DNA of 64,000 bases from Macrostomum lignano (taxonomy: Eukaryota). Below, piece after piece: positions 41 to 51,369 of the stretch (the first letter of the stretch is position 1; every line of letters starts with the position of its first letter). The translations under genes were made by a program, and so were the position numbers. Where the stretch lies: positions 204,408 to 268,407 of the forward strand of contig NIVC01001274.1 in assembly GCA_002269645.1 (NCBI GenBank), read 5' to 3'. The notes under the pieces were generated by a model. That model was given only the letters and a program-made list of their open reading frames with translations. It did no database searches and had not been told where the DNA came from.

Positions 41-250
41 TGTCAGCGATTAGTTACAGGTGTCAGCGATTAGTTGCATGTGTCAGCGATTAGTTGCATG
101 TGTCAGCGATTAGTTGCATGTGTCAGCGATTAGTTGCATGTGTCAGCGATTAGTTGCATGTGTCAGCGATTAGTTACAGGTGTCAGCAATTAGTTGCATG
201 TGTCAGCGATTAGTTACAGGTGTCAGCGATTAGTTGCAGGAATCAGCAAT
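41..250. repeat. 20-bp minisatellite (TGTCAGCGATTAGTTGCATG / ...TTACAGG), about 10 copies
   Basis: Exact 20-nt periodicity from 41 to 240 with two unit variants. The last, diverged unit runs into the stop codon of gene X. Confidence 0.95.
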
Positions 251-3029
251 TCGTTGCAGCCACACAAAGCCGCTGTCGCTGCCCGTGTTACCGCCTGTGG
301 TGGCCACACAGCCGCTGCCGCCGCAGAAGGAGCCGCCGCCGCCTCCTCCGTGCTCTTTGAGAGTTCCGGCTCCGCCTCCGCTGTAGCCTCCGCCGGTTCC
401 TGCAGAGCCTTTGTCAGAGCCTGGCGCAGCGCCACCACCGCCTCCGCCGCCAAAGCCGCCGTGGGCTGGGCTGCCAACCCCGGCGAGGCCGCCGACCCAG
501 CCTTCGGCCCGACCGCCGCCTCCGTCTCCGGACTCATTGTCTCGTCGCACGCCTGTAAGTCTGCCCAGCCAGCCGGCTCCGCAACCGCCGGGATTTCTAT
601 TGTGGTCTGCGGTGCTCTGGTCGCTGCTGCCTGGCTGTCCGTTGGCGCCTCCGACGCCAGTTTTTGTTGCCTGCAGTTGTTAGTAAGTTTCTCTTCTAAA
701 AGTCTCCTCGATACCTATTAGCAGCACGAATTAAAAGAACATTCTACCACTTAAAATGCACCCCGATTGAAACAAAAAAATAGTTGCTTTGACTCACATC
801 AAAACTACCAATTGAGTTCGTGCCGTTCATGCCTGCCTGACCGTCGGCACCTAAAAATGCAGATGAAACTGCTTTTACTGAATGAAATGCAGATGAGACT
901 GCTGCTCTCCAAAAAAGATCTCTTTACTCCCCATGCAGGTACTGATTTTGAAAACCGCTAGAACTAAATTTGGATCTATAATTCTTTGGCAGTGCTACTG
1001 TAATACGCTCTTAGTTAAATAGTTAAACCGGCTTTGAAGGTCTCAAGTAATCTAATTCATAACTTGCAACAATACCCCGTACTCTACCATTTCTCAAAAG
1101 CTAGCTCTGAAAATTCCAAAGATTTAGTAACACAGTCGGGTAACCAATCAGCAAACCGTTATTATTTTGTGAAGCTCCTCCACCACCGCCAGCGGCCATT
1201 AGCAGCGAATTGTCCGATGTCCGGTACACGAAGCTGCCTCCTCCGCCTCCGCCACCGCTATCGTCCTTTTGGGCCGGACCTCCGGCCTGACCGACAACGA
1301 TGGCCAGCTGAGTGCCTGCCGTCAGGCTGACATTGCCAGCCACCAGGGCTCCCCTGCCGCCATATTTGGCACTGCCAGCTAGGGTGTTGTTGCCACCGTG
1401 AGCTCCGGCGAGTTCGATTCGGTAGCAGCCGGTCACGTCAATCAATGTGTAATGAATGGAACCAAACCGGCCCACCGTAGCGTCTGGAATTATATTTTCG
1501 GTTTAGTTGGAAGTGAAATAAGCTGAAATCAAACTACATTAATCAGGAACTCGAGAACTTTTTGTTTCTAGAACTTTTAACGACAATTCTGACTGCCAGC
1601 CTTTTGTATATAGCAAGAATTCAACAGTTTCACTATGAACTCTGATCTTTGTTTCGACTGTTTCAAGACTATTGAGATACCGTACCAATTTAACATTATT
1701 CTTTCATTCATTTGTCAGCTGTCATTTTATTACTTGGCGGTGATCGCATACATGTATTAATCAAATAAACTATACGATATTTATAAACTGCAGAGTGGTA
1801 TAAAACGGACGGGAAAACTTCCAATTATTCCATCTTCAAGAAGTTTGCTTGCATGATTAAGATGACGAGCGTAAATGTAGAATTAGAAATCTTATAGACG
1901 TGGGTCCGGTCCACGACGTTTGACTATAGCTACCAGTAGTTTGACTGCCGAGTATTTGTAGACCACTAGAAATTGAATTCTGACTCTAACCCTAACCCTA
2001 ATCTAAATTCTAACCTATCAACCCATCGCAGTCAAACTGCCTCTAAATTCGCATTCAGATACACAGTGTGACGGTGTCAAATTCTGTCAGATACTTTATG
2101 GATCATTACGAGCGTAACATTGACGTTTGTGATTTTTTAATGTAATCTTTATAAATTAACCTGATCTGTTCATCTATTCAATATAATCAATACTTAAGTT
2201 TGTTTTAATTGTATCTCAAAAAGCGAATTATTTTGAAGCGTAATTATTGTGTCGGTTTTTAAATACCGTCTTCCTTCGCGGGCGCTAGCATTGTCTTGTG
2301 ACCAATCAGTGGCAATCACACACTAGCTACGGTCTCTACTGCGAAAACTCAATCTATTACATGATAGACTAAAGGCCCTTTAAGATATTATGCGTTTAAC
2401 TACTACAGAAGCCTGTCCCTTTCGATTGTTATAGAACGGCTGTCAATTAGTAATAAACAAATAAATTATACATTCTCAGTTAAAAGCATACTTTACGACT
2501 ACACTACTGTTCACTTCGTCACACATAGTTCTTGTACTGAAGTCTCTCTTACTTTGAAACTCGAGGGTGACATTGGAAACCGGAGCCAGCTTGATCAGAT
2601 CTTCAAAGTTCTGCAACCTCATCACAATTGCATCAGGCTCCGTCCCCATGAGTCTCCACTCGTTGGTCCCAGCTGGAACTCCTGGCTGCTGAGACACTGT
2701 CACTAGCAGACAAAGACCGCTGCTCTTTCTAAATACGGCGGCAGAGCAGCGCATATGTCCGCACCGCATGGTGCATTCTTCAGCTGACGTCACTCCACTG
2801 ACGTTTAACACATGGCTGGTGATAGTCGAGTTTATTTCCAGAGCACCATTGTACTGGATGTAGCGAGTTCGGTTGCAGTTGCCTACCGAATAATTCAAGC
2901 AATTTTTGTTTTAAACAACACGAAATGATAAGACACTAATACTGAATAAGTTTTACCTTCCACAGAGACAATGCAGCACAGAATCATAATGGTAGCAGCC
3001 GTCTGACTTTGAATACTTCCAGAGCACAT
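230..3029 (-). CDS. Gene X: secreted PAN/apple-like + ALK/LTK-type glycine-rich domain protein, 407 aa, 5 exons
   Basis: Exons 3029-2957 (MCSGSIQSQTAATIMILCCIVSVEG, signal-peptide-like), 2882-2553 (PAN-like, EECTMRCGHMRCSAAVF...GLCLL), 1483-1157 (GCYRIELAGAHGG, GGRGA, LAIVVGQAGG, GGGGGSFV, LLMAAGGGGGAS), 850-798 and 670-230 (GGCGAGWLG, GGFGGGGG, GGGYSGGG, GGGGSFC). All introns are GT-AG, phases are compatible, and the CDS totals 1224 nt ending in TAA. Confidence 0.85.
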
Positions 3030-3775: not shown

Positions 3776-4420
3776 TGTGATTTAATAGGGATTAGTTTTA
3801 TTTTAAGGCTCTAAGACAGAACCTGTGGTGACTTGGCTGGGTTGATTTTTGTTAGGGATGTTAGCTTGTACTTTATTCAGTGTTTGGGGGTGGTGTTTTT
3901 ACCTGTTTCGCTCTGTGCGGCTTTCTACAATATCTTGATGTACTCTCTTACTCATGTACGTTCTTCAATCTGGCTACTTTTGTTCTCCAACCTTATCCAC
4001 TAAATGTATCGTGCTCAATACTTACAATATAAATCGCAGTCGCTTGCCTCGTATCAAGCTTATATCGTTCTACAATCTAAAGTGAAGTCTTTACACTGGC
4101 GACGAGCCATGAGCTTGTTGGGCTCAGTTGAACCCTTTGAAGAGGGGAGTGAAAAATGGCAGCAGTATCAAGCCAGATTGGAGCAGTTCTTCGAGGCGAA
4201 CGACATCAGACCTTAAAGCAGCGTGCGGTTCTTCTGAGCGTCTGCGGCAGGAAGACCTACCAGCTGATCGCCAGCCTGCTGTCTCCGCAAGAGCCGGCCA
4301 AGTCTGACTACGCTACGATCTGCGAAAAGTTAAAAGATCATTTTGATCCTGCACCGCCCGAGATTGTGCACCGTTTCCGGTTTTACAGCCGCGGCCGTCA
4401 GCCTGGCGAAACCATCGCCG
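3776..4420 (+). mobile_element. Ty3/gypsy remnant: 5' LTR-like segment, primer-binding site and truncated gag
   Basis: TGTGAT...TTACA (3776-4095), then TGGCGACGAG PBS (4097-4106) and ATG at 4109. Gag-like MSLLGSVEPFEEGSEKWQQYQARLEQFFEAND / KQRAVLLSVCG...LKDHFDP...HRFRFYSRGRQPGET with a frameshift. Confidence 0.75.
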
Positions 4421-5030
4421 ATCGGCCTGGCGTCAACATGCAGAAACCGTCGTGTTTCCGCGCTGGTCTGGTTCCCGGCGTCCGCGAGGATTTGCGGCAT
4501 CGCCGCGGACTTGCCTGGGCTGCCTTTCGTCTGTGAGGGCAGTCCTGCAGTCCGAGGCCTTACCTGACCGCCAGAAGGCGGCGTTTTTCCAGCCGATATT
4601 GAGATCGTCCTGCTGTACAACGCCAAGACTTGGACGCTGACGGAGTCGCCCGAGCAACAAGTTGACGCGGCGCACGCTGGCCTGCTGCGCGCCGCCTTCA
4701 AAATCGGTCACGAGCGAGTGGCCGAGTAACCAACGCGGCTTTGTATCGCCGCGCCGGCCTGGTCCGTCCAAGCGACCTGTTGCGCCGTCGGCGACTCCAG
4801 CTAGCACGCCACATCATCTGCACCGAGTTGTACCGCCCACAGCCGGTGCAGGAGGTGCTGCTGCTAACGCTGCAGGCACCTTACCGGCGGCGGGGGCAGG
4901 CGCGCACTCGGCGTTTCGTCGACTGCCTGCTGGCTGATGCCGGCGCCCCGGATTCGGCCGGCGGCGTTGCATTCGTTCGCGACCTGGCCTTGAGGTGCAC
5001 CCTGTGACGCTGAACGCGTATTCTGTTGTT
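4421..5030 (+). mobile_element. 3' fragment of an RTE-like non-LTR retrotransposon (degenerate)
   Basis: Across frames it reads GLVPGVREDLRHRRGLAWAAF..., VLLYNAKTWTLTESPEQQVDAAHAGLLRAAF, TNAALYRRAGL..RRRRLQLARH. This is the C-terminal region typical of RTE-clade ORFs (LLY..ETW motif). Multiple indels. Confidence 0.7.
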
Positions 5031-6464
5031 GTGTTCCCAATCGATTTGTCTAACAAGTTATCGATTCCAACCGCTTCACTAAATTCAGGTATGTTTTTGC
5101 TTAGAGCAAAATTGAGCAAAAGGAATAAAATATTTACATTACAAGATTTTTTTCACCAGTTGAGCTAGTGAATTTTTCCAAAGGAAAAATATGGCTACTG
5201 TAAAGATGCATTTCTACTAATAGTAGTAATTTAAGCAAATTTAGTGAAATAATTCAGTTTGAATATCAATCAGAGACTACTTGAACTTAGTTTCATAAGA
5301 TATCAATAGAGTTATATAAGAGAGGCACATCATATCAAAAGGACAGGTGAACATTGGGTCTGCATCCTATCCAAAGCAATAATTTTGTTATCCTTCAAAG
5401 CTTCAAAATATTTCCATAGATTTCGAGACGTGTCTTTCTACTTTAGTAGTCCTTGCGTTGAATAATTTTGGATGACACACGTTTTCTGTTTAATTAGACA
5501 ATCGCTTTCACAAAATTTTGTAAGATATTTATTATTTTCATTTTTAAGGCTATTCTCTTTCGCTATTAACTGTTTCCTACTCTGAAATAAGTTTAGGAGT
5601 TGAGAAAGGCGACCCTTGAAACTCTCAAGAGCCTTGCAACGTATGCAGATCCAGCTGTAGCCATTCAGTCAACAAAGTGAAATTGCTGCTTTGATAGCAA
5701 TCAAGCCATGTATGGCACTTGCAGCTTCCCAGACCAACTGTATGTACTAGCTAGTAGACTCTGTTTTTATTAGAGTCAAGTGAACTTGTACCCGATTGAG
5801 CTTGAACTATTGCTGACAAGAGAAATGTTGCCACGGTCAAAAAAAGTTTCTGAACAATCAATGCTCCGTGCTGAAAAATAATGCAATAGAATTGTTATAT
5901 CCTGCTTGAATGATTTTCCTGTGAACCCATTTTCTAGCGATACACACTGCCTGCATAGGACCGTGACTGTATAATACAGACTTTGCGGACGGATATTACA
6001 CTCGAAATCAGCATTCAAGTGAACACGCAAGCAATTCACTAATACGTGGGCTAACATAATGTGAAAGTACCACTTTGCATGCGAACAATTAAAACTATTG
6101 TTCACTATTATAGTTCTGATGCCATATTAGCTCTTTTAAGTTCGTTTTCTATTGCTCAAAACCGTTCAGAACAAGTGCACACAGAAGTATTGTCATAAAA
6201 ACATCCGTAGTACCTCCAAAAACCAAGGATACATTTTTGCGGAGAACTCTTTGTCTTAAAGATGATCTTAAAAATCTTAAAAATTTGACTTTAGACGAGA
6301 ATTAAACATTGCACGAATACGGTATGCTGTAAAGAAGTAGTCTAAATATTTCTAAAAATTCTTAAGATTTTTGTTCCTATTAAACGAACGTCACACAGAC
6401 TACCTTTTGCTTCAAATTATTTTAGTTCAGTAGCTACTCTTTTAGACAACAGGCCTCCTTGGTC

Positions 6465-9400
6465 TCAAGGACACGAGCCAAGATTCGCCAGACTCAGCAG
6501 CACAGAGCCGTGCTTGCTGGCCGTGTTGCCGCCAGCACTGCCGGTGCAGCCGCTGCCGCCGCAAAATGAGCCACCGCCGCCTCCGCAATGGTTGCCGTAG
6601 ATACCGGCTCCGCCGCCGCTGTAACCGCCGCCAGCTCCGGCTGCGCCAACGAAAGAGCTGGAGGCCGTACCAGCACCTCCTCCACCGCCGAAGCCGCCGC
6701 AGGCGATGCTGCTGCCACCGGCGCTGCCTCCGACCCAGCTGTCGTTTTTACCACCGCCTCGATCGCCGTCGTAGCTGTTGTACCTGCGGTGTAATAATGC
6801 TCATATAGTCACTTGACGAAAGGATTTCAGTGTTGCACTGTCTCAAAAAATGAACTTTCCGACAGTAAATGAAGCATATTTGTATTAGTATTTTGTCTTA
6901 CAAGGTTGATTTACAAGTTTATAGGACATATTTTTCGAAAGATAACAGCATATGCAGTTCCTTTCTTTTCTTCTTCCTTTCTGTATTGGGGATTTCTAGT
7001 TTCAGAGCTAAAAGTAAAAACCATATTTTTATGCGATTTTAGATGAGCTTTTCACTGCAACAAATCTGCTTTCTGTGATATTGGCACGATTTCCAGACGT
7101 AGAATGTACTGCACAGTATTTGCGCACGTGCTTTAAGATCCTAGATACGCCAATATAGGCCAGTATACTCATGCTTACCTGGGGTTCACAGGTTTCCCCA
7201 GCCAGCCGGCACCGCAGCCGCCATGGTTCATGCCAGAGGAAGTTGTTTTAGCACTTGGATTATTGCTTCCGGGTTGACCGTTTACGCCTCCGATTCCGAA
7301 AAGATGGCTCTGGTGATTTGATATGAAGTTAACTGATACCAGCAAACGTAAAGAAAACTATTTGCAATGAGGCTCATCTCGCCAAATCATATAGTAAATC
7401 GTAAAATGCGGTATTTGTTGATATGCATGTAAATTTAAAAAATGGAGCCACACAGTCGTCTCACAGCCAGCAAAAAGTACTTGTGCACATTTGCTGACCT
7501 CTAAACATGTCGTCGCACAGTGTTTCTACTGTGGATGTTGTAGGAACCTGCGTGAGTCCACCCCAGTGCCCAAACCCAAAATTGTTGTGGTCGTGCCCGA
7601 AAAAATAATAACAAACGACTTTATCGCTCCGCTATCCACCGTCTCTGCTACGCTACGCTTGTACAACCGAATTGACACAGGCACATGGATTATGCATTCC
7701 GCTCGATGATTTCCACATAACATTCTATTTCATATTTCAACACATTTCCATAAAAATTAAGTGGCTTGAATTACACCATATTTCATAATTGCAGCAAAAT
7801 ACGGCTTGATGGCTCCTCCATGCAAACTTTCCGTTCTCAAAGGTCTTCAGAAGGTAGAAATATACGAGCTACAATCGATTCAAGATAGAAACTACTACCG
7901 TTTTTTTATTTCGATAGGCCCTACCAGTTGCTGAAGATGAACTTTTCAAAAAAATTTAATGTGTTTACGCATTTGTATGTATGCATCAGTAAAAAGGCAG
8001 GCTCAATATTGGTTGAGCGCTGGTATGATAGGATACCGCAATTTTGTCTTAGGCTCGGTACCTCATGAATGACACAAGATGGCCAGGATGAATTCCTGAC
8101 TTGTTGCTTGAAAGCATACTTCTAAGCAAATAGATTCTCTGTTTCACAACTCAAAACCCATGCAAATACGAGTAGAGCTCAATAATTGAAGAGGCTTTTC
8201 TTACTGATAGCTCAGGTGTGTGAAACTTACCTCACCTTCACCTAGGGAACCTGATCCGTTCACGCCTGCCTCGCCAAGCCTTCCTAAAGAGATAATTTGC
8301 ACACAAAGCTTAGGCATTCAAAATGCGAATTTCAAAAGTAAGACTGAACACTACCATTTGAACTCACCATCGTATGCGAAGGACGCGCCGCCACCACCGC
8401 CGGCAGCCATCAAGAGTTGATTGTTGAATGCGTCGTACGCGAAGCTGCCTCCACCGCCGCCGCCACTGTTTGAAGACGAGTCTGCCGGACCGCCAGCCTG
8501 ACCGACAACGATAGATAGCTGTGTTCCCGCTGTCAGGTTAACATTGCCAACGACCAGGGCTCCCCTGCCGCCGAACTTGCTGCTACTAACCAGGGTGTTG
8601 TCGCCTCCTTTTGCTCCGCTGATTTCGATGCGATAGCAGCCGGTAAAGTTTATAACTACTTGTTGGATGACACCGAACCGACCGGTGCTCGAGTCTGGAA
8701 TCAGGAAAAACAGTTGAGCATTGTTGAGTTTTGCTGAACCGTAGAATCATGAGCAATTAAAACAGAAGGATGTCAAACTTTAAAACTGGTTTTGAAGCAA
8801 AAATTTCACGGATTCCTAGTTTCGAATCATTCTACTTCTGTTGTCTCTGCATGAAATTGTGAAAAACAATGAAACACTTGCTTGAAAAAACGCGAGTGAA
8901 ATTGATTTTGGCTGTTGACTTGATTATATCTTCAAAATCCGGTAGTTTCCACGCGACTGTGTCAGTCTCAGCTCCCAGGAATCTCTGCTCGTTAGTTCCA
9001 GTCGCCGATCCTGACTCCCCAGACACGGTCGCCAGCTGGCAGAGACTGGTGCCCTTCCAGAACGCGCCAGCAGAGCAGCTCATCAGTCCGCATCGCATGA
9101 CGCATTCCTGCACTGTCGTGACTCCGGTGACGTTCAACACTTGGCTGGAGACTGTCCCGTTGATGACTAGGACACCAGAGTGCTTGACGTAGCGAGTTGA
9201 ATTACGACAAGAGCCTAAACGTTTGTAAATGAAAGCTTCATACATGTAAACCTGACGTCGCCAAGGACTACTTAAGTAAAAGGACAGAAAAGTTTTGAGA
9301 GGCAGGTTTTACTGTTAAATACGCTCGTACATTACTGAGAATATATATAAGCTTTAAAAGATGAAAAATGGATCAAGTCGACTTATTGGTTTTATGAATC

Positions 9401-9913
9401 TATCAAGGACAACTTTGACGGGAAATGACGGGAATTAATAACTTAGATGGGCCTCCAAATATTGTCGTTTCCCGTCACCGAGTATTGAGTAGTCTCTAGA
9501 ATCTATTTTATCATTCTGTTGAACATTTTTATTTCATAGTCAGCCAAGATCTCTTATTTTCTAACCTTAAAGGTTTATGATTATCAATTTCTGCTATAAG
9601 AAAAAGCAATACATATAACGATGAAGATCATGGGTCTGCCTCCGATCAGAGTCAGTAGCAATTTTTGTTCTGAAAAAAAACGAAAACCGTTCTTTGTAAT
9701 GTTTTTTTCGGTAAAACATGCCCCTTAAAATTTTTCAACTAGCGTATTTTACCGTCTTTCTAATTGAAAAATCCTTGGACGTTATATGCACAAAACAAAA
9801 CAAAATAGTAACGAAATAAAACAAAATAAAACGGATCTCTCACCCTCCATCGAGCCGATGCAGGAGCAAACGAAAGCGCAAAATATGATAAATCTAATGT
9901 GCGTTATCTTCAT
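6465..9913 (-). CDS. Gene A: secreted PAN-like + ALK/LTK-type glycine-rich domain protein, 410 aa, 6 exons
   Basis: Exons 9913-9844 (MKITHIRFIIFCAFVCSCIGSMEG), 9214-8882 (PAN-like; ends at a GC donor), 8694-8368, 8283-8231, 7309-7179 and 6783-6465. Total 1233 nt, open to TGA. Exon 3 (327 nt) and exon 4 (53 nt) have the same lengths as in gene X. Confidence 0.85.
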
Positions 9914-10029
9914 TTCTTTCTAATACGCTCATATAATTGAGTCTTTCTAAGGCAACTGTTCTTCTGCCGACGTAGCAGATGATTATTTTCCAATATGCTC
10001 AGAAATCTTAGTCACTTTCAAGGCATGAC

Positions 10030-10103
10030 TATATATATGTGTATATATAAGCTGCTCACGAAGTTCCTGTCCATTACACCTATCGCTTTTCGTCGCAACC
10101 AAT
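10030..10103 (-). promoter_or_regulatory. Candidate core promoter of gene A (CCAAT box + TATA-like tract)
   Basis: CCAAT at 10099-10103 and TATATATA tracts at 10030-10050 lie in canonical order upstream of the ATG (9913). Both are retained in the A' copy (34008-34012; 33944-33952). Confidence 0.35.
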
Positions 10104-11705
10104 CAACGCCTTTTTCGCAATTTTATCCAACCACGCTGCCATGAAGGCTTCATTTCTGACCAGGAGTAATAAAACTTGCCTGTAGCTGCCACGCTGGATT
10201 CATAAGAAGAAGCTTAATGAAAAACTCGGAGGCCATTTTCAAGGTCTCAACTGGTACGCTACTTCTTTTGAAAGATCAAGTATCGCAGAGTTTTTTACGC
10301 GTCTATAGGCAAGCTGACTAGATCAAATTTGAATTATGATCAACCTATCTGTCCAAATAGGCTAGGCCAGTGATCCTTAGTGAACTCGTTTCTAAAATTC
10401 TTTTAAAATATTATAGTGACGCGTATGTTATAATGTATTTTGCCTAGCCTTATTTAGAATAGATTTTTTATGGGGATTATTGTGCTAGTGAGTCACCATT
10501 ATACACTGCTTAATGTGCGTATTACAGAATTGAGTACCCATATGATACATATATACTCGTGAATGTACTGGCTCGCTTTTGGCCTAAAATATGATGGATA
10601 GTTCTAATACAACCGCCTGTCTATCAAATACATCAATCGATAGAAGCTTCTGATTGGATGAGCTCAGGATGACTAGCGCGACTCTGATTGGCTGATCTCA
10701 AGACCTCAAAACCATCTCCACCTGTCGATCATAAATCATAAATCATAATTGAAAGTAGTTAATTAAACGTAGGAGACAAATTGAATGTCAAAACCCTTAA
10801 CTTTCTGAAGCAGACGTGACTGCAGTATATCGCAGCTCAATAAAATCAAATATGACAATAAAATACAATCACTATGATGATACGAAACTGGCAGCTACGT
10901 CTTGCATAGTTATATGAGAGGCGGTGCAAACAGTAGGAATAACTGCTGATACAGGCAATAGAATTCTACAATCAGGTGATGCTATGCACAGCAAATATGA
11001 ATACTCGTAAAAATGAGAAGCAGCATTGTTCAGCTGACGTCTGCAATGTCAACACAATTCTTAGCTTTCAGAAAAACTAACGCGCTTCTTAGCCAACCGC
11101 GGGCCAAAAAAGGAGCAAAAAGGAAGCCACAGGGGTGTCGACGAGGAAGCAGTCTGGCAAGAAGCAAATGTATTTGAAGCAAATATCACGATGCGATGTC
11201 ACGGCGTACATGTATAAAAGAACGGACGTAGAAGCGCCTTGCAATTTTCCGTGAACAAGCCCTAAATGAATGTGTCAAACCAGGCATCCAGATGTGTTTA
11301 AGCTGCTCTCTCCCCGCTTTTAGTATCTAAGCAATCTGCCAACAGTCGCTACAGGCTTACATGTATGTTGCTAAGGCATCAATCGATAATTTAAGCCCAC
11401 ATACGGAAACACACACAAGCATCACGCAAGCCAAATAAAAAGCATAAATCGCTTCTGCTGTTAATGCACGATCTCCATCTGCGTTTCAGAAAAATGTCGG
11501 ATCAGTCGTTTACTTACTGACTACTGACTGACTCACTACTTTGTGAAACATTGTCTATTTAGAGTGTATACCAAAGAGACGGACAACGTCCCATTCCGTT
11601 TGATAGTGAGTAAAAAACAAGTAGCGATATAGCATCCTTACACTTCTACTGCCATTTAGGAAAGCTGGGACTTATATACTAGTATAGTTGCTTCATTTAA
11701 ACCGG

Positions 11706-12030: not shown

Positions 12031-12398
12031 GTAATCAGTTATATTATTATTATTTAAAGCTTGAGCTTTGTCAAAGCTTTGGTTAAATTTAATTGAACTC
12101 ACGTCTCGCTACTAAACTATCGCAGTAGTGTCGACCGTCTTTACTCGATATTTTATGGCACAAAATGTCAGAATTTAACCATCCATAACAGCTTTTATAA
12201 TGACGTATACTTTTGTCTAACTACATCAACTGCAATCAATCAAGGACTATCTGGCACATTTACGAACTATACTTTTGGATTGCAATTCAAACCACAGTGG
12301 TTAAGTCATAATAAATAGCCAGCTGGCAAATTTAATTTTCTTTACGAATTATTCCCAACAAAGAACCACAGTGAGCTTAGCTCCTAGTCATGCTTTAA

Positions 12399-40020: not shown

Positions 40021-41454
40021 TGGAGTTTCAATACAAAGATAAGGGTTAATCCGCTTTCTTTGTTGCCGCGAAATTATTCCAAATATTTTTATTCCTTGTT
40101 CAAATCGAATTTTGTTTTTAATTTTTTGTCGCAAAAATATTGGAATTTTTTTTGTATTTGTTTCAAAAGAAATAATTTTTTGAGTTCTCGCACATGCCTA
40201 TAATGCTCAAATAATGTAATGTTTCGAAAGCGACAATTCCTTCGAGCAATTTGATTTTACTTCCTCTCGATTTTTTTGCTATTAGAAGACAGATGTCAGT
40301 GATGTACTTGAAACTATTATTTATTGTACACTCACCTGGACACCAGCCACCCCGTCCCCCAATCATGTACGTTGCTATCGATTGCTCAGCCCCCCTCGCC
40401 CCTCTATATAATATGCTTTATGACACTCTTGACTAATACACGTTTTCTCTCGGTCGCACGCTCATTACACAGTAGAAGACACGATTGTATTTCATAATAT
40501 AATACTTTTACAGACATCAGAGATTGGTGCTCTAATACTGACAGCTACTTGAAAAGTCACATAAAGAGGAAGTGCAAATAGTAAGAATAACTGATATAGG
40601 CTACAGAATCGTAGTTAATGCTATCCACAGCAAGTTCGAATACTCGTGTAAAAAATGAGAAACAGCATTGTTCAGCTGATGCCTGCAATGTCAATACAAT
40701 TCGTACATTTCAGAAAAACAAACAGCTTTTCAGTGAACCGTGTCGAAAGAAGCAAAAGAAAGGCTCAGGGGTGTCGGTGAGGAAACAATCTGGCGAGAAG
40801 TAAATGTACGCTCGTATCTTAAGCGAATTTCATGATGCAATGTCACGATGTATATAAAAGAATGGACGTATAAACACCTGGAAATTTTCCTAGCACAAGC
40901 CCCGACTGAATGTGGCCCGCGACCCAGGCGTCCAGATGCATCTAACCTTTATACTCTCTCCCCGCTTTTAGTATCTAAGCAATATGCTAACAGTCACTGC
41001 ATGCTTGCATGCGTAGCTAAAGGCTGAATATCCGATCAATTTGAGCGCACATGCGGACGTAATTTTATCATGAAAAATCTGTAACGAATCCTAAGACGTA
41101 AGTAAAATATTTGCTATCAGAATATCTTTTAAAAAACAGTAAATGAGGCCTAGCTATTGCTCAAATGCAGATGCAGGAAATTACAAAATGGAATATTGTT
41201 TAGGATTATATAATGACCGCATATAAACCATGTATATATACATGTAGTAGCACCATGGCACCCAATTATGGCAATCGAGATTTAAACGATTGCGATTTGA
41301 AAAATAGAAGAAGAGAGAAAAATAGGTGATAGCAAACACTGTGACGATGATTTCTGCTAAAACTTGAATAATTGCTTTCCACTTGAATAACAGAATTTTT
41401 CGATTGCTAATTGAAGAGAGTGGCAAAAGTCCAATTTGGACACTCTCTTACAAT

Positions 41455-41999
41455 TTTCATAGCTGGCAATGGAGGACCGCAGGTGGCGGTGGAGTCTTTG
41501 CAATCGTCTTGGAATAATCACGATAAATTCCATCTTATATTTTTATGTATTGTTATATTCAGGAAAGCCAGGCAACATATAGAAAATAATGGAAGAAATT
41601 AAACTGGACTCCTTAGTTGCTCCACTTGAACCAGAAATGGAGATCTTGGAGGTCTTCAACAATCCAAATAGCTCCCCTCATAAGTTTCTTGATGCTGTGC
41701 ATCCGAGGCGGGGTCAGGTCGATGGCGACCGAGGCGAAAGTGTTGCTGGATTGCTTAGCAATTGCGGTTTCGGTGGAGGCGGTGGTGGAGGATTCGGCAC
41801 AGGCTCTAGCGATTGCGGTTTCGGTGGAGGCGGTGGTGGAGGATTCGGCACAGACTCTAGCGATTGCGGTTTCGGTGGATACGGCGGTTACAACGGTGGT
41901 GGAGTCGGTCTGTGTGGCGGTCAGGCCGGTGGCGGCGGCTCGTTCTGCAGCGGAAATGTTGGCCGCTCACCCAGACAGGTGATGACTATTTTAGCTTGA
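41455..41999 (+). pseudogene. Remnant C': decayed family paralog with an internal 51-bp tandem duplication
   Basis: GDRG..., (CGFGGGGGGGFGTxSSD)x2.3, GGYNGGGVG, GGGGSFCSG match the last-exon motifs. Short upstream traces of exons 3 and 4; no PAN or signal exon found. Confidence 0.6.
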
Positions 42000-43404
42000 T
42001 CCAAGAGTTTGTCCGTTGATTCTTGTTCGAACGTGTTCATATTGAAAGAGAGGCTTCGAAATTAATCCATGTACATATTAAATCTACTTTTACCAACTTC
42101 CTAAAACCTTTTGCCTGTTAAGAATTTGTTTTATTGAACTCATTTCTCCCTACTAAACTTTAGCAGTAGTGTTGACCGTCTTTGATCGTTATATTTTGCA
42201 ACGGATTGTGAGTAATTTAACCATCCATAACAGCTTTTATAGTCTCGTGTACTATTGTCTGAAACTGTATTGTAACTTCTACACATAAATTGTATCTGAC
42301 ACATTAATATAATGATGATGATGGATTTGTAATGATCGTACATGACCGGTAATCAGTGATGACCTTTGAAAATTTAACTTCCATTACCGTACATTCCATT
42401 AGCGTACTTTAACTTTTCCGCAAAATTCTAGAACGTTCCATAGCGCAATAAAATATCTTTTAAACAAATCAGATACAAAATTCATGATATAAATGCACTT
42501 CTCCTTTATTTCAGTAAAATAATGAAACTATATTTTATGTAATTGATTTGTTACTACTACAATTTTCCCGAACATTTCCCGAACAGAATATTTTACGGCT
42601 CATGCATTATAAATTTACAGCAGGTGTTCAACGACACCAATGTAACTTTAATAGAAAATGCCCTTATTTTGTAGTTAACAAGTGAGCCAATGAGCTAAGC
42701 TTTGTATAGCAAAGCCCATTGCAATGTCAAAATAGCAGCCTTACATCGCCAAAGATGCGCCCCTTTCAACTAGCTGAGCGGGTGAAGTGCTTGAGACAAG
42801 AGGGTAAGGCAAATCCAGGCCCTTCATGAAAAATTGCTAGCAAGCAGTTGCAGCTGGGAAAAAGAAAAACTCAATCCGTGAGAATTACCTTAAAGAAGGA
42901 AAAGTTCCTGCAATTTAAAATTTCTGTCCGTCGGGACTGTATGCAGCACTATATGCATCATGATATTAACTTTTGTTAATAGCATTAACGGTTGGTATTT
43001 TAATTCTTTCGTTTAAAAAATTTGCATATTTAACCTTGTGACTTAGAGCTTATACATTAAATATACTTGTAATCTATTAATCTTGTAGACTAAATGAGTA
43101 CAGTAAAGCAGTGCCAAACTTAGTTATAAATTCAAATTTTGTAGCTGCTACATACATCGATTCGAATATCTACCAGAACAATATTTGAAGTTTATTTACA
43201 GCTGTACATGTGCTGTGGTTGGGAGCAGAGCTGGAAAATGTCAGTGTTTCGTTACTTTAGTTTTGCATGCATCAAATAAAGTACTTTATATTAGGAGCTT
43301 TGCCTCAGCTTGCTTGTGCTAGAATATTTGTGCCTCAGTCAAACATGGCTGCATCTGATCTCGTTCTGAGTTCACGCTCAGAAAAAAATCTTGCTCTCTC
43401 GAGA

Positions 43405-44242
43405 CAAGGAGTACAGAAAACTCAGGACGCAGAACTTAAACTTGGTATGACTTTTTAGCATTCTAAGATCAGTTATATTGTTAACCCAAGGACAACTTGA
43501 TAACTCAGGACCGGAAACGAGCCAATTCATGGCGAAAAAAGTATGAGGCTCGTTTAAAAGCATTGTTCTATGGCCCATCCGTATGCGCAGCCAATGTATA
43601 CTCGGATGGTGGATGTAGCGGCCTTTAATTTCTTCCCTTTTTTATCATTGGTGCATCTTGAGGCCAGTGCTTAGCACACACGCTCATGTAGTCTGTCACG
43701 GTCTAAACAACAACAAAATTGTTAATGAATTCATGTGGCCAGGCTAAATCTGATTCACAAAGCACATTTGAAGAAAGTCTTACCGTCAGTTGATTAGGCA
43801 GAGACAGTCGCCAAGCCTCTCGTTCAGTTGCATCTTTAGGAAAGGAAAATACTGCAACATTCCGATCACGGTTACTATTGTAGTTTGCACAAAAGAAAAT
43901 GACGCTGAATTTTCTCGGCATGATATTTAGTTTCGGCAAGAATAAAATTTCTCTCTCTCAATTGCAAGTGCATGCGAAGAACTCAATTTTCAGCTCAGAT
44001 TTCTTCGCTTTCGTAGCTTTGGATGGGCCATAGAACAATGCTTTTAAACGAGCCTCATACTTTTTTCGCCATGAATTGGCTCGTTTCCGGTCCTGAGTTA
44101 TCAAGTTGTCCTTGTGCTAACCTTGAAAAGTTATTTTTATGCTAATTAGTTAGACTTTTTACCATAGAGAATGCTTTCATACGCGCATTGGAAAATTTCT
44201 ACAAAGTTTAAGTTCCGCGTCCTGAGTTTTACAGTAGTCCTT
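43405..44242. mobile_element. P-element-like MITE (outer element) carrying a nested insertion
   Basis: TCTCGAGA|CAAGGA ... TCCTTG|TCTCGAGA: 8-bp TSD and ~39-bp imperfect TIR. Empty site TCTCGAGA at ~14885-14892 in block 1. Confidence 0.85.
43487..44114 (-). mobile_element. Inner P-like element with 94-bp TIRs and a degenerate THAP-like coding remnant
   Basis: TIRs 43487-43580 and 44021-44114 match on inspection; TSD TGTTAACC/TGCTAACC. The minus strand reads MPRKFSVIFFCANYN...VFSFPKDATEREAWRLSL, the FPKD..R..W pattern of THAP domains, with the first Cys lost. Confidence 0.8.
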
Positions 44243-45618
44243 GTCTCGAGATTAAGACTATCATTTTGTCGATAACGCTCACCCAGCCTTAAGTCATAGG
44301 CTTAGCAAATAGCCCGAGAAGCATGAGGACTTGAAGACTAATAGTTCAGAAAAGGTCTTACTATAAGAAGAAGCGTCATCGGACTCAAAAGGTGAAGTAG
44401 GACGAAAAGGAAGAAAATCTAGTAGAAAAGGGAAACTGAGGGAAAAGCCCTAACCAAACTAAAAAAACTTTTCTACAATTAGAAAGTCTGAGAGTCAGAG
44501 AAGAATCCCTCTCTGGATGGACGTAAAAATTCAGTTTAAATGTACTGCAGAGACATGACCTGAATGGGGACTGGGGACAGAGACACTGAGTCTTACTTTG
44601 CGCACCTTGACAACGGGACAGCAAATAAAACAAGTGAAGGTCAGTTGAGAAAATGTAAGACAGTAAAGCTTTGGGAGCGGGATACAGCACCTCATTACAA
44701 TTCTCACTCACAATTTCAGTACTGAGAGTCGGCAAACACACAACTTTAGAAGATGCGTCAGCCACAGGTATTGCTACTCTTCGCCATCGGTTTCTGCTGC
44801 ATCATGGTCTCGGAAGGTGCGTATTGAAGTTGACTTTTTGCTCCTAACTAGTTAATTAATTGGAAAAGCATATCCAAGTTTTGACCTGAAAAAGAAGGAC
44901 TTCAAATAGAAGGAGAACTAATCGATATGGCCAGCTTTTCCGATTGGCTTTGCTTGTTTCATTTTTAGCAGGGGCTACCTGAGGAGGACGATATTTAACA
45001 ATCAACAATTTTGGTCGTATTAGTTTCGGAGACTAAATCTCAAAGCGAAAATTATATTGAAGACATCTAACGACGAGGCCCCTTGAGTTAAACGTTTCAC
45101 CGCTGGACAGGTGATAAGCTGGCCCCCTCCATAACAATTGCCATGCAGGCGCTTGCAACCGAACTCGCTATGTGCAACACAACGGCGTCCTTGTTGTCAA
45201 CTCGACCGTCAGTAGCCAAGTCCTGAATGCCACCGGAGTGACTTCAGTTGAAGCATGCGCCATGCTGTGCGGAATGAAATCCTGCTCTGCCGCCGTGTTC
45301 TGGAAGAGCAGCGGTCTGTGCCAGCTGGTGGCGGTGTCTCGCGAGCCGGGATTTGCTGGAAACAACGAATGGAGACTACTGGGCTCGGAGACTGCTGACG
45401 CGGTGGTGATGAAGCTGGAAAACTTCGAAGAACTGATGAAGCCTCGTATTATAAATGTCACTCGAGTGTTTACAAGTGAGAGTTCAGCCGCATGCATAAT
45501 TGCATAGATTATCGCACACTTGGTGCACTTTTTCCCTCTTCCTTAGGTCGGCTCCAGCTGGCCACAAGTCACTACGATTGTTTTGTTTTTGCTTTTCCTA
45601 ATTTCCGCTTTTCCATAT

Positions 45619-45661
45619 CAAGGACTACTCAAGTACATTATATATACTAAAGTTGTCCTTG
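45619..45661. mobile_element. 43-bp minimal CAAGGAC...GTCCTTG element
   Basis: Same termini as the P-like elements. Flanks TTCCATAT / TCCCGTGT both resemble the single TCCCATGT at the empty site in gene B (~16262). Confidence 0.55.
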
Positions 45662-46892
45662 TCCCGTGTTCGTTTTAAATTCAATCCATATAAGCATATT
45701 TGAGTCAGCGATAGCTAATTGAAACATGCATGGATTTCAGACAATGGAACGGGTCGAATCGGCTCTGTCCAGCTGGTGACCATCGACATTGCCGGCTGCT
45801 ACCGAATCGAACTCGCTGGTGCTAAGGGCGGCGACAACACGTATGTCAGTCCTGACAAACTCGGCGGCAAGGGAGCTCTGGCTGCTGGCAACTTCAGTTT
45901 GTCAGTCGGAGTTCAGCTGTCGATTGTTGTCGGCCAGGCCGGAGGCCCATCGCAGAGCAGCAGCTACTCTAGCGGCGCGGCGGCGGCGGGGGCAGCTTCG
46001 TGTACCGGACATCGGACAATGGGCTGCTGATGGCCGCTGGCGGCGGCGGGGGCGCCTCGTATGGGTATTCCGGTAAGCATGCGATTTTTATTGTATCTTA
46101 ACTGAGACGTTTGGTAGTTGCTTTTGCCATATTGTCGTATGCAGCTATTCAATAATGTATTTGTCAAAAGTTTCAAGAAACTGAAGCCGGTAAACAGTTT
46201 AGGGAAATGGCGACTTAAGTATCTTTTATCAAGTATATTTTTAAGTAGTCCCTGAACCAGGGACGAAACTACACTGAAGAATGTCTCAGTCTATCGACGC
46301 ATTTCTATTGTAAAATTGTGAAATCTTCATGGATCTACAGGCCAGAGTTCATTGATGGTGCAGGCTGCCAGAAGTATTGCAGAATTTTTTCTGCTTCACA
46401 ACACTTTAGCCGAGACAGTCTTCAATTAACGACGATCGCATGCTAAAATTCTTTTTATGAAAGCAAAAGTTGGCACTTATACTAACTGAAAAGTAAAGTG
46501 AGCAGTATAACAACTTCTAAAAAATAAAAAAGTTAAACATTTTTCTTGTTGCAGAACTTTAATATACTCAGCAACATGTTAAAATTTCCAGCCCGAAAAC
46601 AGTTGTCAACTTTTCTCGGATCTCAGTCTTAAGTAACGCAATTCACAAAACGCCTGCGGTTCTCGTCTTAAAGCTGTGGGTGATGCAGCTTAGGCTGGTG
46701 AGGTGACAGTGGAGAGTTATTGGCTAGAGTTAGATTACAGCTGCCGACCTCTGGTTTTGTGAAAAACTTTAACATATTGCTGAATGTATCTGCGTATTTG
46801 AGGGTGGTTAATTTAGCTATGGGAGATTTCAGAGCATTACTTCCCACTCCAGTAGATTTGGGTAAATGAGCAATCGCTGCTTAAATTCATTA

Positions 46893-47084
46893 GGCTGTAT
46901 GCAGAAAGCTTAGTCCAGACTAGCCAGTCCGGACTTGGGTAGTTCAGTCTATAGTCTATGGTCCAGCTACCCTAGTTCTGTCTATAGTAGACCGGTCTAA
47001 CTTTGCGTTTCTGGATACAAAATCCAAGTCCAGACTAGCTTTTCGAGACCGGACTACCCTAGACAGAGCTTTCTGCATACGGCC
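46893..47084. mobile_element. MITE, possibly PIF/Harbinger-like
   Basis: TIR GGCTGTATGCAGAAAGCT / AGCTTTCTGCATACGGCC (1 mismatch). Absent from gene B. Left flank TTA; right flank not matching. Confidence 0.55.
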
Positions 47085-49989
47085 CAAAGAATGAACTGAC
47101 TGTAAATGAATTTCAGGTCGACCCGGAGAGGCGGGCACAGGAGGCTCAAACTCGGTCGGGACTAACTCTGTAAGCCAGCTTGGCCGTTCAGCAGATGTAG
47201 AAACTTTTATGTAAAAACTTTAGTCTTTTTTAACAAAAGAATTCACAATTGCATTTAAAGCCTGCAGGAGTATACGTGCATGCGTTTTCCAGAATCTTCA
47301 TTCAAACGCTTGCCCAGCTACTTTTTAGAAATGCTACGGAATACGTTAGTCATTATAATCACTTCAGTGTATATTGAAGAAGCTTTTCCCTTCTGAAGAA
47401 GTTCTGTTTCGAGAGCACAGCTGTATGTCGCATGTTGCGCTCTTCATTTTTCCTATCTCATTTTTTCCTGTAATGTTCGCAATCAGTAAAAAAGTTTAGC
47501 GTCCTTCTGCTTTAGTCTAAACAAAGCAAATGGTGCAAAAGCATAACCTACATGGCTTGCAGGCAGCCCAAACTGGCATCGGAGGCGTTAACGGACAGCC
47601 GGGCAGCAACGACCAAAGCACTGCGGCTACCGATAGAAACCCTGGAGGCTGCGGAGCCGGCTGGCTTGGCAAGCCTACCGCCGCCCGCACAAGCACCCAA
47701 TACGGAGACAGAGGCGGCAGTCGCGCCGACGGCTGGGTCGGCGGCAGAGCCGGAGACACGAGTCCCGCCGACGGCGGCTTCGGCGGTGGCGGAGGCGGAG
47801 GCGCGGCCACCACCAAAGGAGCGGCAGGAGCCGGCGGAGGCTACAGCGGCGGCGGAGCTGGGGCTCGCAGCGACCACGCCGGAGGAGGCGGCGGCTCCTT
47901 CTGCGGCGGCAACGGCTGCGTGGCCACAACGGGTGGCAACACGGGCAGCGAGCACGGCTTCGTGATGCTGCAAATGATCGGCAGCGGCTGCGCTTAGTCG
48001 TCGGTTTTTTAACTTTTTAAGGGAAAAAATGAAGGTCAAAAGAAAAACTTACTGTGATTTTAGAGTTTTCAGTGGTTTTAAGGATGCTCTGTTGTTTGTT
48101 TTCTTGGATACAACGTTTATTATATCAAATGCACGTAGGTAGCTCGTAGTTAGACACTACTTATTTTTTCCACCCATTAAAAGTGCTGAGCTGGGATAAA
48201 GTAGCTCGACGGTGACCTGTTTGAGTTTCTTGTCGGACTGATGATCTGTGGGTTCGGTTTTGAACAATGGCTACATTTACTACGATTCTAAATCCAGGGG
48301 CTAGCTTGTGGTGGGATTTCTGCCCATCAGGTCCATGAAGGACTACTCTCTAGGCACAGAGTAGCTACTTATCTCAATAATTCATGCAAATAAGGTTTTT
48401 TGTATCTCTAACTTGTATTTCTAAATCAATTACTTTTTTGTTTTACCGTTTCACTGTGTCAAAATTCAATGCCTAATATTGTACGTATAATCGCATATAC
48501 GAGCCTATTTTAAAGATAAGTCACGTCCTGAATATTGTTTAGATTAATAACTTTAGTTTTTTGGTGTTCTGTGAATAGCTAGTACTATTTGTTATTTTCT
48601 GTATGAATTAATTTAATCGATTTTCTATGTAAGTTCCAAATATACTGGACCGATTTCTTTTTTCAAGTAGGGCAACTCTTTTCTGAAATATAGCTCATAC
48701 ATGTATAGTTGGACTAAATTTTTTCCTGAAGTATCTTGTAATCAGTTGGTGCAATCCCTAATTAGACAGCTAATATTCAGTTACAGACTTCGAATATTAT
48801 TTCTTTTAATTCTACCAATGCAGAGGCAAAACTATTTATCTGTTGTTCTTCTTAAGTGTTGCCTCAGCTAGATAACATTTATTCCGCCATGCGAAAAGCA
48901 ACAAAAATGTATGTTTTTTTTAATCAATAAAACTAATATCCGTTAACACCTGGAAATCGATCGCTTATTCTTCTGTCAATTAATAGTTTGTAATAATAAA
49001 CCACATTCTGACGCTTGATCAGACGGTAGGTAGTAGGTGGTCCAGACAAACTGACTGAAGATTTACTGACTTTGCTTTAACTTTGACTTTAAAGCTGTTA
49101 AATAGAAAATATATTGAAATTATTGAGTACGTACATTTATATGGGATACCTCTATAGTATATATAACTATAGCTTGTAAATAAAAGCGTGAATTTACAGA
49201 ACCCAAAACCATAGCAGCTTGAAATTGAATTAGGCTTACACTCCAACGAATGATGTAATAAAGACACATCTATTGATATATACCTGGCGTACTTAACTTG
49301 TCGCTAAGTTTACAGAAAATCTTTCTAACCTTAAGCTACTTAAAACTTATAATGCCCTTCCTTGTATTTATCTATTCTTTTGCTTTAGGCTTTTCCAGAT
49401 CCAGTCAGCTCAGCTAGTTTTTACCTTTCATATGCTAGGCCAGGAAAAATTACCTCAACTTTTTGGCGACAAAGCCTTGTGTCGATTAAATATTCATGAT
49501 CAACACTGGGTAAATTTGTTAATTCCACAGCTTGTTCCACTCTAAAACTGGCTATTCTGCTTTGCGCCAATCTTGCTTGAAGTAGACAGTTGAGTTGGGC
49601 CATCAAGCTGCAGGGATGCTTTGCAGTAAAGAGAGAAAGATAGGAGGTTGATAGAAAAAACTCAAACTTAATGGTTATGGAAGAGCGACGTAGACATCAC
49701 GTGGTATCGGTAAGCAACCTTTCAATGTACGACTGCATGAGGTGAAAATTTACGAAAAACTCAACTAATGATAAATAATAGAAGTACACAAGCGCAAACA
49801 GGTGCTATGAGTAGTGTACGTTGCATCATATCGAAATAGCAAAAAATCTGCTGCATCATTGAATTCTGTTACATCATAGTTGTCAAAAGTAAGAAAGTCA
49901 GACAAGATCGCTTTGATATGGTATTACACAACAGTATCAATTACTTTGATAGGTGTTATGACTATGAAATATGAGAAAGTCTTCATTGT

Positions 49990-51369
49990 TTAATATTCAA
50001 CACAATAATTTAAACTTGCTAAATGTTCTCATAGTTAACTTGACTGTCATCAGACAAATCCTAAAAGGTGACCCAAAGTCGCTTCTGTACAAGAGTAGCG
50101 GCTCCGGAAGAACAGCTGCCAAGCTGATGACAGTTTCTCAGTTAATGCTTCGAGCTGAGTTTACAAGAGTCGGTTGAAACTTCCAGGAACAGATCGGAAC
50201 ATTGTCAACTAGCTAATAACCAGCTGGTGCTGCCGGCTGCTACCAAATCGAGCTCGCTGTTGTGTCGACACTTTTTTTATTAAAACGAGCTCAGCGATAG
50301 GGGAGACGTGATAGCCGGTAAAGTCAGCCTGACAGCCAGAACTCAGCTCTCTATTGTCGTCGGTCTCTTTGTGTACCGGACATTGGCACTGAGCTAAAGG
50401 CCGCCAGAATCATGGCTGATTCTTTCAAGATTTCATATAGCTTTTGGACTTGCAGAACTGTTTTGTGGACTTGCTTTTGCCCATAGACATTTCCTGCCTC
50501 TGCCTGCTGCTTTATCCTGGCAATCCTGGCATCCATTTGCAAGAGCCAGGTGTCTCAACGACAATCTTAATTAGTTTTTAGGCTTTTGTTTTCCTTTGTT
50601 TTTTTCTCCTTCCATCCTCTCCGTTTGTCTTCTTTCACTTCCTTTTTCTTTTCCTCTTCGTAGCTATAGGGGCACCATTAGTGCTGTTGGTCTTTGACCA
50701 CTCTGATAGTGAGTTTCATATAATAAAAAAAGAATAATATTACATAATCCGCTATTGGCTGCCATCGGCGTCGGTGGTGCATCTTCCGGACAGAATGATA
50801 GACGTTGAGTTTAGTAGTTCTAGCTGTACTGAGGCTGTACTGAAAATACATGAGACATTTATATTCCAATCATGCAAATTTCAAGACTGCAAGGCAAAGC
50901 AGACACAATTGCGGCCTGCATGAACTCCTCCCATACCTCTGATGTGAGTCCCTTAAATCAACTTTACTAAAACGGAACCTTAGATGCAGGACAGGTTCGA
51001 GAGTGACCGTCTGATTGGTTGAGTTTTTATTTTGCAGCCTACATAATAGGACTTATAAAATATTCCAGCCGATAAGGACTGACATTGGAGGTGCCAACAG
51101 TCAGCCTACACAACTTTGGTTGCAGCAGCAACCCGAGCACCGAGCACGGAGGCAGAGGCGGCAGTCGCACTGACGGTTGGATCGGCGGCGGCGGTGGAAG
51201 AGCCGGCTCGGTGCCACCAGCGACTTCCGGCTGGGCAACGGTCGGAGCCGATGGAGGCTTCTGCAGAGGAAGCGGCTGTGTGGTCACCATGGGCGGCAAC
51301 ACGGGCAGCAAAAGCGGCTTTGTACTGTTGCAAATGAAAACAACAATTGTGGTTGCGCTTAAAAACTGA
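49990..51369 (+). pseudogene. Remnant D: heavily decayed family paralog
   Basis: Collinear traces: VLIVNLTVIRQIL and LYKSSG (PAN exon), GCYQIELA and AGKVSLTARTQLSIVVG/FVYRT (exon 3), and STEHGGRGGSRTDGWIGG...FCRGSGCVVTMGGNTGSKSGFVLLQM (last exon). Large internal deletions. Confidence 0.75.

Follow-up and report, generated by a model that had tools for sequence, protein, structure and literature searches.

A probable birth-and-death gene cluster of Macrostomum lignano encoding kinase-less proteins, predicted to be secreted, that join a PAN module to an ALK/LTK-type glycine-rich domain

The stretch of DNA analysed here, referred to as the window, comprises 64,000 nucleotides of the flatworm Macrostomum lignano (contig NIVC01001274.1, positions 204,408 to 268,407 of the forward strand, assembly GCA_002269645.1), and has the features of metazoan genomic DNA, with short introns, several transposable elements and a GC content of 35-57 %. 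Between positions 230 and 51369 lies a cluster of five spliced genes of about 400 codons (G1 to G4 and G6), four intact and one carrying a +2 nt frameshift, with three decayed fragments among them. Our results indicate that this is probably a birth-and-death cluster encoding small secreted glycoproteins of two modules, a PAN/apple domain followed by a glycine-rich domain (GRD) of the type found in the receptors ALK and LTK. The gene structures, the domain homology, the lack of transmembrane and kinase segments, the duplication history and the purifying selection were computed directly; from these we infer secretion, glycosylation and a binding role with its targets.

Experimental knowledge of the TG (TNF-like plus glycine-rich) domain is limited to its cytokine-binding function in ALK and LTK, medically important receptors with an unusual polyglycine-II architecture. 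Profile comparisons and a modelled fold both indicate that the C-terminal module of the window proteins is a TG-like domain, homologous to this ligand-binding domain. The Pfam family PF12810 (ALK_LTK_GRD, cut-off 24.5 bits) matches the first GRD exon with 41.1 bits in G1 and 36.6 bits in G3. A single-sequence phmmer search of the PDB with G1 gave no match, and a profile of the family (alignment A1) retrieved nine distinct chain sequences from the same database, all of them ALK (E 4.5e-16), LTK (4.5e-12) or SCD-2 (1.9e-11), with the whole TG domain covered. A structure was modelled (AF2) for P0001, an M. lignano homologue that has 43-50 % identity to the window proteins, with the window exons included in the alignment. 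Over most of the GRD the model has a predicted local distance difference test score (pLDDT) of 76-93. The modelled domain is bounded by beta-strands on either side and includes about 150 residues that form neither helix nor strand, as expected for polyglycine-II helices; as modelled, the domain is a TNF-like beta-sandwich bearing a polyglycine-II helix lattice. When the P0001 model was compared with the PDB by Foldseek, the first 21 places were all taken by ALK, LTK or SCD-2 (E down to 6.4e-11, target-normalised TM-score 0.65-0.67). The motifs that do not consist of glycine, as well as the cysteines, are conserved from flatworm to coral. An initial annotation, made from the letters of the window, had proposed an ALK/LTK-type TNF-like plus glycine-rich domain with a series of glycine motifs; the assignment holds, and the motifs are all present in the order that it gave.

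Human ALK and LTK and Caenorhabditis elegans SCD-2 (TG ectodomain; PDB 7NX0, 7NX1, 7NWZ, 7LRZ and 7LIR) share with the window proteins a match over the full length of the domain, the strands of the beta-sandwich and the ordered polyglycine motifs. The differences from ALK and LTK are nevertheless considerable. In the window proteins the TG-like domain is not followed by an EGF-like module, a transmembrane helix or a kinase, and it is preceded by a PAN module instead of MAM or LDLa modules. Identity to ALK and LTK is 21-25 %, the helical insert that ALK has between the VGQ.G and poly-G motifs is absent, and there are many tandem paralogues rather than one or two receptor genes.

Each gene begins with a separate first exon that encodes a methionine, a hydrophobic core of 12-17 residues and a terminal ..EG, and each protein has 6-9 N-glycosylation sequons, several of which are conserved; the products are predicted to be secreted and N-glycosylated. 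No further 19-residue segment of the proteins resembles a membrane helix, the best candidate being the conserved strand region ..ALVAGNVSLTAGTQLAIVV.., and all five genes stop 5-10 residues past the last beta-strand (..GFV.LQ..), an end that is shared by the M. lignano and coral homologues. No EGF-like module or transmembrane helix follows the TG-like domain in any of the five genes, kinase catalytic-loop (HRDxxxxN) and DFG motifs were not found in the six frames of the window, and no kinase motif was present among the 265 homologues examined. On the favoured reading the window proteins are not truncated receptors, and the absence of a kinase and of a membrane anchor noted in the initial annotation is supported. 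Two M. lignano proteins are named as kinases, A0A1I8G307 (P0122) and A0A1I8FUX3 (P0231), and Pfam finds no kinase domain in either. The first is a fused gene model in which two to three tandem PAN + GRD copies are joined to IFT140; the second has no Pfam match of any kind, so its name is unsupported. Kinase-type automatic names ('receptor protein-tyrosine kinase' or 'protein kinase domain-containing') are also found on many viral and bacterial entries, and there too Pfam detects no kinase domain in the proteins so named. Such labels seem to have been carried over from the PF12810 match or to result from fused gene models.

The PAN/apple family is an established protein- or glycan-binding module. 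The five PAN exons scanned (those of G1 to G4, the G6 exon having a translation identical to that of G3) score 22-28 bits with PAN_1 (PF00024; cut-off 21.4), with E values of 1.2e-5 in G1 and 7.5e-5 in G3, in agreement with the domain proposed initially. The conserved cysteines follow the pattern C-x3-C-x4-C-x11-C, preceded by an N-terminal cysteine; the last spacing had been read as x10. Foldseek gave a weak match of the PAN part of the P0001 model to the N domain of HGF, which has a PAN fold (probability 0.9). The core cysteine pattern and an above-threshold Pfam match are held in common with the PAN/apple domains of HGF, plasminogen, prekallikrein and nematode and apicomplexan adhesins. The window module differs from them in that it is divergent, occurs only once per protein, has five cysteines, is predicted to be heavily N-glycosylated and is fused to a GRD. 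The GRD has five cysteines as well, and a disulfide bridge between the two domains is therefore possible.

The PAN-like and glycine-rich exons were located by tblastn of exon translations against the window and lie in the order first described. Gene models were then drawn from three-frame displays and splice sites, and the remnants came from a more sensitive tblastn pass; the original count of five spliced genes and three remnants was borne out. All copies share one exon plan, consisting of a signal exon of 64-73 nt ending in phase 1, a PAN exon of 327-333 nt, a first GRD exon of 327-332 nt, a mini-exon of 53 nt and a last GRD exon, which in subtype A is divided by one more intron. G1, the only member of subtype X, occupies 230-3029 on the minus strand and is intact, with canonical GT-AG sites and an open frame of 407 residues over five exons (signal peptide 3029-2957, PAN 2882-2553, first GRD exon 1483-1157, mini-exon 850-798, last GRD exon with the stop 670-230). 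A 20-bp tandem repeat of 10.9 copies (41-258) starts at its stop codon, and the repeat unit, read on the minus strand as ..GCTGACACATGCAACTAA, resembles the last codons of the gene, GCTGATTCCTGCAACTAA, as if the coding 3' end of G1 had been amplified.

G2 (subtype A, 6465-9913, minus strand) is intact and encodes 410 residues in six exons (9913-9844, 9214-8882 with PAN, 8694-8368, 8283-8231, 7309-7179 and 6783-6465), the last two arising from the split GRD exon. G4 (30912-33838, minus strand) is a recent copy of G2, 95.7 % identical, with an open frame of 394 residues and six exons (33838-33769, 33139-32807, 32618-32292, 32205-32153, 31673-31543 and 31182-30912); an in-frame deletion of 16 residues has removed most of the penultimate C-terminal segment. 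The introns have GT-AG splice sites with one exception: in G2 and G4 the second intron is of the GC-AG type, with the donor GCAAGT (8876-8881 and 32801-32806, minus strand), whereas the orthologous intron of G1, G3 and G6 is GT-AG. We adopted the GC-AG reading because it is the only one that keeps the frame and because it also yields the junction ..NSSTGR.G.. of Macrostomum proteins; at the exon 2-3 junction G2 reads ..FSNSSTGRFG.., in agreement with ..RNSSTGRNG.. in the M. lignano proteins. The search for poly(A) signals 3' of the stop codons gave no useful information.

Subtype B lies on the plus strand. G3 (15389-28280) is intact, with five exons (15389-15452, 15826-16152 with PAN, 16341-16670, 20051-20103 and 27846-28280) and 402 residues. 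Within its fourth intron (20104-27845), on the opposite strand, is a non-LTR (long terminal repeat) retrotransposon at about 20915-27764 with long open frames, in which an ORF1-like region (25100-26675), an APE endonuclease (24099-25076) and reverse transcriptase plus RNase H (21340-24102) can be recognised; the element is absent from the paralogous intron of G6 and looks like a young insertion. G6 (44753-47997) is a recent copy of G3, 94.3 % identical, with exons at 44753-44816, 45149-45475, 45741-46072, 47117-47169 and 47563-47997. Two extra nucleotides in a GGC run near 45975 put its exon 3 out of frame, and once they are removed the frame is open throughout; either G6 became a pseudogene very recently or the assembly is wrong at this point.

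The three remnants are all on the plus strand. R1 (11732-11815) retains a single GRD piece, ..HGGCCAGWLGRAV.., whose tblastn E value of 0.011 is weak by itself; its position within the duplicated block makes it the counterpart of remnant G5 in the other copy. G5 (41691-41990, tblastn E 1e-15) is a degenerate fragment of a last exon (..GDRGESVAG..CGFGGGGGGG..GGGGSFCSGN..) with an internal 51-bp tandem triplication, the tandem repeat covering 41756-41879. G7 (50232-51369, E 5e-16) combines pieces of a first GRD exon at 50232-50364 (..GCYQIEL.. and ..SLTARTQLSIVVG..) with pieces of a last exon at 51063-51336 (..GGRGGSRTDGWIGG..GFCRGSGCVVTMGGNTGSKSGFVLLQM..), from which the polyglycine stretches have been deleted.

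Self-comparison of the window revealed a segmental duplication in which the block with G2, a remnant and G3 recurs as the block with G4, a remnant and G6 (approximately 5951-16959 plus 27764-28703 versus 30370-46362 plus 47483-48429). The lineage expansion anticipated in the initial annotation has thus proceeded by tandem and segmental duplication, and its three divergent subtypes are also recovered: G1, the pair G2/G4 and the pair G3/G6, with 54-65 % identity between subtypes. The ratio of non-synonymous to synonymous substitution rates (dN/dS, Nei-Gojobori) is 0.31 for each young pair; in the old pairs, where dS is 0.8-1.25, it amounts to 0.25-0.34. These values indicate that the paralogues are under purifying selection and that the genes have been retained. 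The frameshift in G6, the fragments and the 16-residue deletion in G4 point, in turn, to ongoing birth and death. Intron positions and phases are conserved even between the paralogues with dS of 0.8-1.25; this conservation, the dN/dS values and the significant domain matches place the cluster far beyond chance. In the GRD, dN among the window paralogues is 0.07-0.11 in the glycine motifs, compared with 0.39-0.77 in the intervening loops, which evolve 4-9 times faster. Functional diversification of the subtypes, as suggested at first, found no support in these data; dN/dS is well below 1 in every domain segment save the short C-terminal one, where it reaches 0.63-0.95 in comparisons with G2 (0.95 for G1/G2).

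The best matches of G1 are M. lignano proteins named 'Apple domain-containing' or given similar automatic names, with 43-50 % identity over the full length; for G3, identity reaches 71 % over the GRD. These entries (for example A0A1I8HRN4, A0A1I8GD17, A0A1I8JJH8 and A0A1I8I814, called 'Apple domain-containing', 'PE-PGRS family' or 'receptor protein-tyrosine kinase') have the same signal + PAN + GRD architecture and the same C-terminal end; they too are in tandem in the genome, and none is identical or nearly identical to a window protein. They were taken to be either paralogues or another species' orthologues. Hundreds of coral proteins and open reading frames (ORFs) of ENA contigs come next (41-47 % identity by BLASTP, up to 53 % in the alignment). 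The cnidarian GRD proteins resemble those of the window in being kinase-less, in having a signal peptide and in ending with a C-terminal GRD at the same point (45-53 % GRD identity), and they differ by additional EGF, C-type lectin or other modules between PAN and GRD and by an insert of about 30 residues (..SVEVKGGQSTN..AAQLGLSVEDNAG..) that the flatworm-type proteins lack. Examples are PAN + GRD in Porites harrisoni (ABFA07_017308), EGF + GRD in Nematostella (XP_048576998, 'loricrin isoform X2') and in Acropora, Montipora and Pocillopora, and six EGF modules + C-type lectin + GRD in the jellyfish Sanderia. In many ENA contigs the whole GRD was called as a single product of about 300 residues without upstream modules, which suggests that the coral GRD is encoded by one exon, as opposed to three or four in the window genes.

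Beyond these relatives the family widens greatly. A hidden Markov model search of 1.84 billion representative sequences returned 6296 clusters at E<=1e-3, 2246 at E<=1e-10 and 169 at E<=1e-30, many of them proteins of 1000-6000 residues with several copies of the domain. Among the members are a Branchiostoma protein, Monosiga A9V5Y3 with five copies, a heterolobosean protein, giant proteins of Flavobacteriia secreted by the type IX secretion system and a protein from a Brocadiia metagenome-assembled genome. Predicted viral structures (BFVD) yielded 66 Foldseek matches at E<=1e-3 (best TM-score 0.64), including virion structural proteins of Synechococcus and Caulobacter phages. The GRD proteins of bacteria, phages and giant viruses (PF12810 or PF21722) have the same fold and are extracellular, with the domain often C-terminal on adhesin- or fibre-like proteins; compared with the window proteins they are much longer and often multi-copy, have other partner domains and no PAN, and share about 20-28 % identity. 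Contrary to what had been supposed, the order of the glycine motifs is not specific to ALK and LTK: without a kinase, the domain occurs in at least 6296 clusters, and these extend from fibre-like proteins of phages and from bacterial proteins to those of choanoflagellates, cnidarians and amphioxus. With the A1 profile ALK scores 62 bits, whereas the 150 best kinase-less representatives score at least 127 bits with the very similar A2 profile. Seen from this locus, and as far as profile scores can tell, ALK and LTK are distant, outlying members of a large extracellular family of kinase-less domain proteins. This kinase-less branch is old and very large, and in it the domain commonly stands at the C-terminal end of secreted or surface proteins, among them fibre-like virion proteins of phages, T9SS proteins of bacteria, EGF/lectin proteins of choanoflagellates and cnidarians and the PAN proteins of Macrostomum.

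The domain family (PF12810) and the receptor fold were already known, and the PAN + GRD architecture is already in the databases, in the M. lignano 'Apple domain-containing' entries and the Porites protein. The statement that this architecture is uncharacterised therefore stands as far as the literature goes, no description of kinase-less PAN + GRD proteins having been found in the literature searched, and falls as regards the databases, where it exists in unstudied entries. No functional study of the M. lignano 'Apple domain' proteins was found, and in the paper on the pedal disc of Exaiptasia loricrin occurs in the reference list only.

As to function, we consider it reasonably probable, by analogy with the relatives, that the window proteins are soluble components of a secretion or matrix, similar to adhesins, lectins or cross-linkers and independent of ALK signalling. 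After cleavage of the signal peptide and N-glycosylation, the protein would be released into an epithelial or gland secretion or the extracellular matrix, where the PAN module would dock on a glycan or protein partner and the rigid glycine lattice would display the fast-evolving loops between the glycine motifs as a second binding surface. The secretion may be mucous, adhesive, reproductive or immune. A secreted binding protein is the most economical reading because the modules that accompany the domain in animals (PAN, EGF and C-type lectin) are those usually seen in extracellular binding proteins and in proteins of the matrix, and because the relatives from prokaryotes and phages belong to surfaces or fibres. 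Most plausibly the flatworm proteins work like the adhesin- and fibre-type GRD proteins of bacteria and phages. In the polyglycine-II adhesins of the phage gp38 type, glycine-rich motifs alternate with hypervariable loops that bind the receptor at the fibre tip, and the conserved glycine motifs and fast loops of the window proteins recall this pattern; this is a resemblance in working principle, not membership, and no gp38 structure was among the PDB matches of the P0001 model by Foldseek.

Several observations weigh against this reading of the locus. The PAN scores are just a few bits over the Pfam threshold. The whole G1 protein scores 21.3 bits with PF12810, under the cut-off, and several homologues are also just below it; these sub-threshold scores imply that domain databases under-annotate the kinase-less branch. 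The structure model is that of P0001, not of a window protein, and its mean pLDDT is 70, while the signal peptide was judged by hydrophobicity alone. No positive selection was seen over whole domains or loops, loop dN/dS being about 0.28 where measurable. The adhesin or lectin role is argued by analogy, from the partner domains on the one hand and on the other from homologues in phages and bacteria that are themselves mostly of unproven function.

An alternative, which we regard as unlikely, is that the cluster is an innate-immune or microbe-recognition repertoire, in which variable loops on the polyglycine-II scaffold, together with the lectin-like PAN module, would recognise microbial surfaces in the manner of phage fibres. 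The tandem birth-and-death evolution with three subtypes and pseudogenes would suit such a repertoire, as would the concentration of substitutions in the loops, the 66 structural relatives of phage virion or tail-fibre type and the joining of cnidarian relatives to C-type lectin and EGF domains. The loop dN/dS and the lack of visible positive selection argue the other way, just three subtypes are present in the window, and the receptor-binding role of the phage proteins is itself assumed from annotation. In a broader and still more speculative form, which we hold to be quite improbable, the kinase-less TG-domain proteins of flatworms and cnidarians would constitute an animal recognition system, in which a rigid polyglycine-II lattice holds out variable loops in the way that the tips of phage fibres do and, paired with modules of lectin type (PAN, C-type lectin), binds to microbes or foreign surfaces; the ligand-binding domain of ALK and LTK would moreover have been recruited from them as its pre-receptor form.

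The initial annotation had raised the possibility of decoys or carriers of an ALK ligand, and the idea found no support. It would have the free TG-like domain act as a soluble decoy, carrier or co-receptor that binds the cytokine of an ALK-type receptor (ALKAL/Augmentor in vertebrates, Jeb or HEN-1 in invertebrates) and tunes ALK signalling. Homology over the whole length of the ligand-binding TG domain of ALK, LTK and SCD-2 is in its favour, and soluble ectodomain-like decoys exist for other receptor families. Nevertheless, the window proteins are closer to secreted cnidarian proteins (45-50 % identity) than to ALK and LTK (21-25 %), and the gap between 62 and at least 127 bits in the profile scores has the same direction. 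The ALK residues Y966, E974 and E978, which we take to be contacts of ALKAL, align to A, S and F in G1 in the profile-versus-PDB alignment, and the ALK helical insert is missing. Moreover, many fast-duplicating paralogues with pseudogenes are not expected of a dosage-sensitive regulator of signalling. An ALK gene or a gene for its ligand was neither found nor successfully sought in the lineage, and the schistosome kinome papers are silent on whether flatworms have ALK. Taken together, these points make a decoy role very unlikely. That the cluster is non-functional, consisting of glycine-rich ORFs from GC-rich simple repeats or of decaying pseudogenes, can be dismissed almost entirely: one copy is frameshifted, three are fragments, G4 has lost 16 C-terminal residues and the GGC-rich exons have long ORFs on both strands, but four copies keep open frames over five or six exons with intact splice sites, dN/dS is 0.25-0.34 at dS up to 1.25, the cysteines and the motifs other than glycine are conserved from flatworm to coral, and the profile and fold matches are significant.

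Other features of the window include mobile elements, repeats and an unrelated gene. A transposase of Tc1/mariner type lies at 35554-36569 on the plus strand, with HTH_48, HTH_Tnp_Tc3_2 and DDE_3 spread over two overlapping frames, which shows that this copy is frameshifted, and a gypsy-type pol fragment (37859-39828, plus strand) contains RT-RNase H and the zinc finger and core of an integrase. An ORF at 4156-4536 (plus strand) is gag-like by eye and has no Pfam match. At the right end, 3' exons of an axonemal dynein heavy chain (60342-63932, minus strand; AAA_9, Dynein_heavy, AAA_lid_11 and Dynein_C) are most similar to molluscan DNAH6, with 67 % identity, and no Macrostomum protein was among the top 120 matches. 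Minisatellites with 33-bp and 15-bp units and (TGTC)n and (TAGT)n microsatellites (52668-53020, 54874-55515, 57686-58004 and 58717-58857) give rise to long spurious repeat ORFs on both strands. On the minus strand at 56210-57507, ORFs with a C2H2-like motif (FECPICAPK..H....H) and glutamine-rich stretches are possibly exons of an unrelated gene; the ORF at 56992-57507 had no Pfam match.

Kinase-less forms of the TG-type domain are far more numerous than the receptors and can be traced as far back as choanoflagellates, bacteria and phages. The labels that these proteins have received automatically, 'receptor protein-tyrosine kinase', 'PE-PGRS', 'loricrin' and 'keratin' among them, are misleading. 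The locus described here provides clean, intron-containing and constrained animal genes in which the domain occurs as part of a free, predictedly secreted protein, joined to PAN. RNA interference, in situ hybridisation and transgenesis are available in M. lignano. The cluster thereby offers an entry point to what this fold did before it was wired to a kinase.

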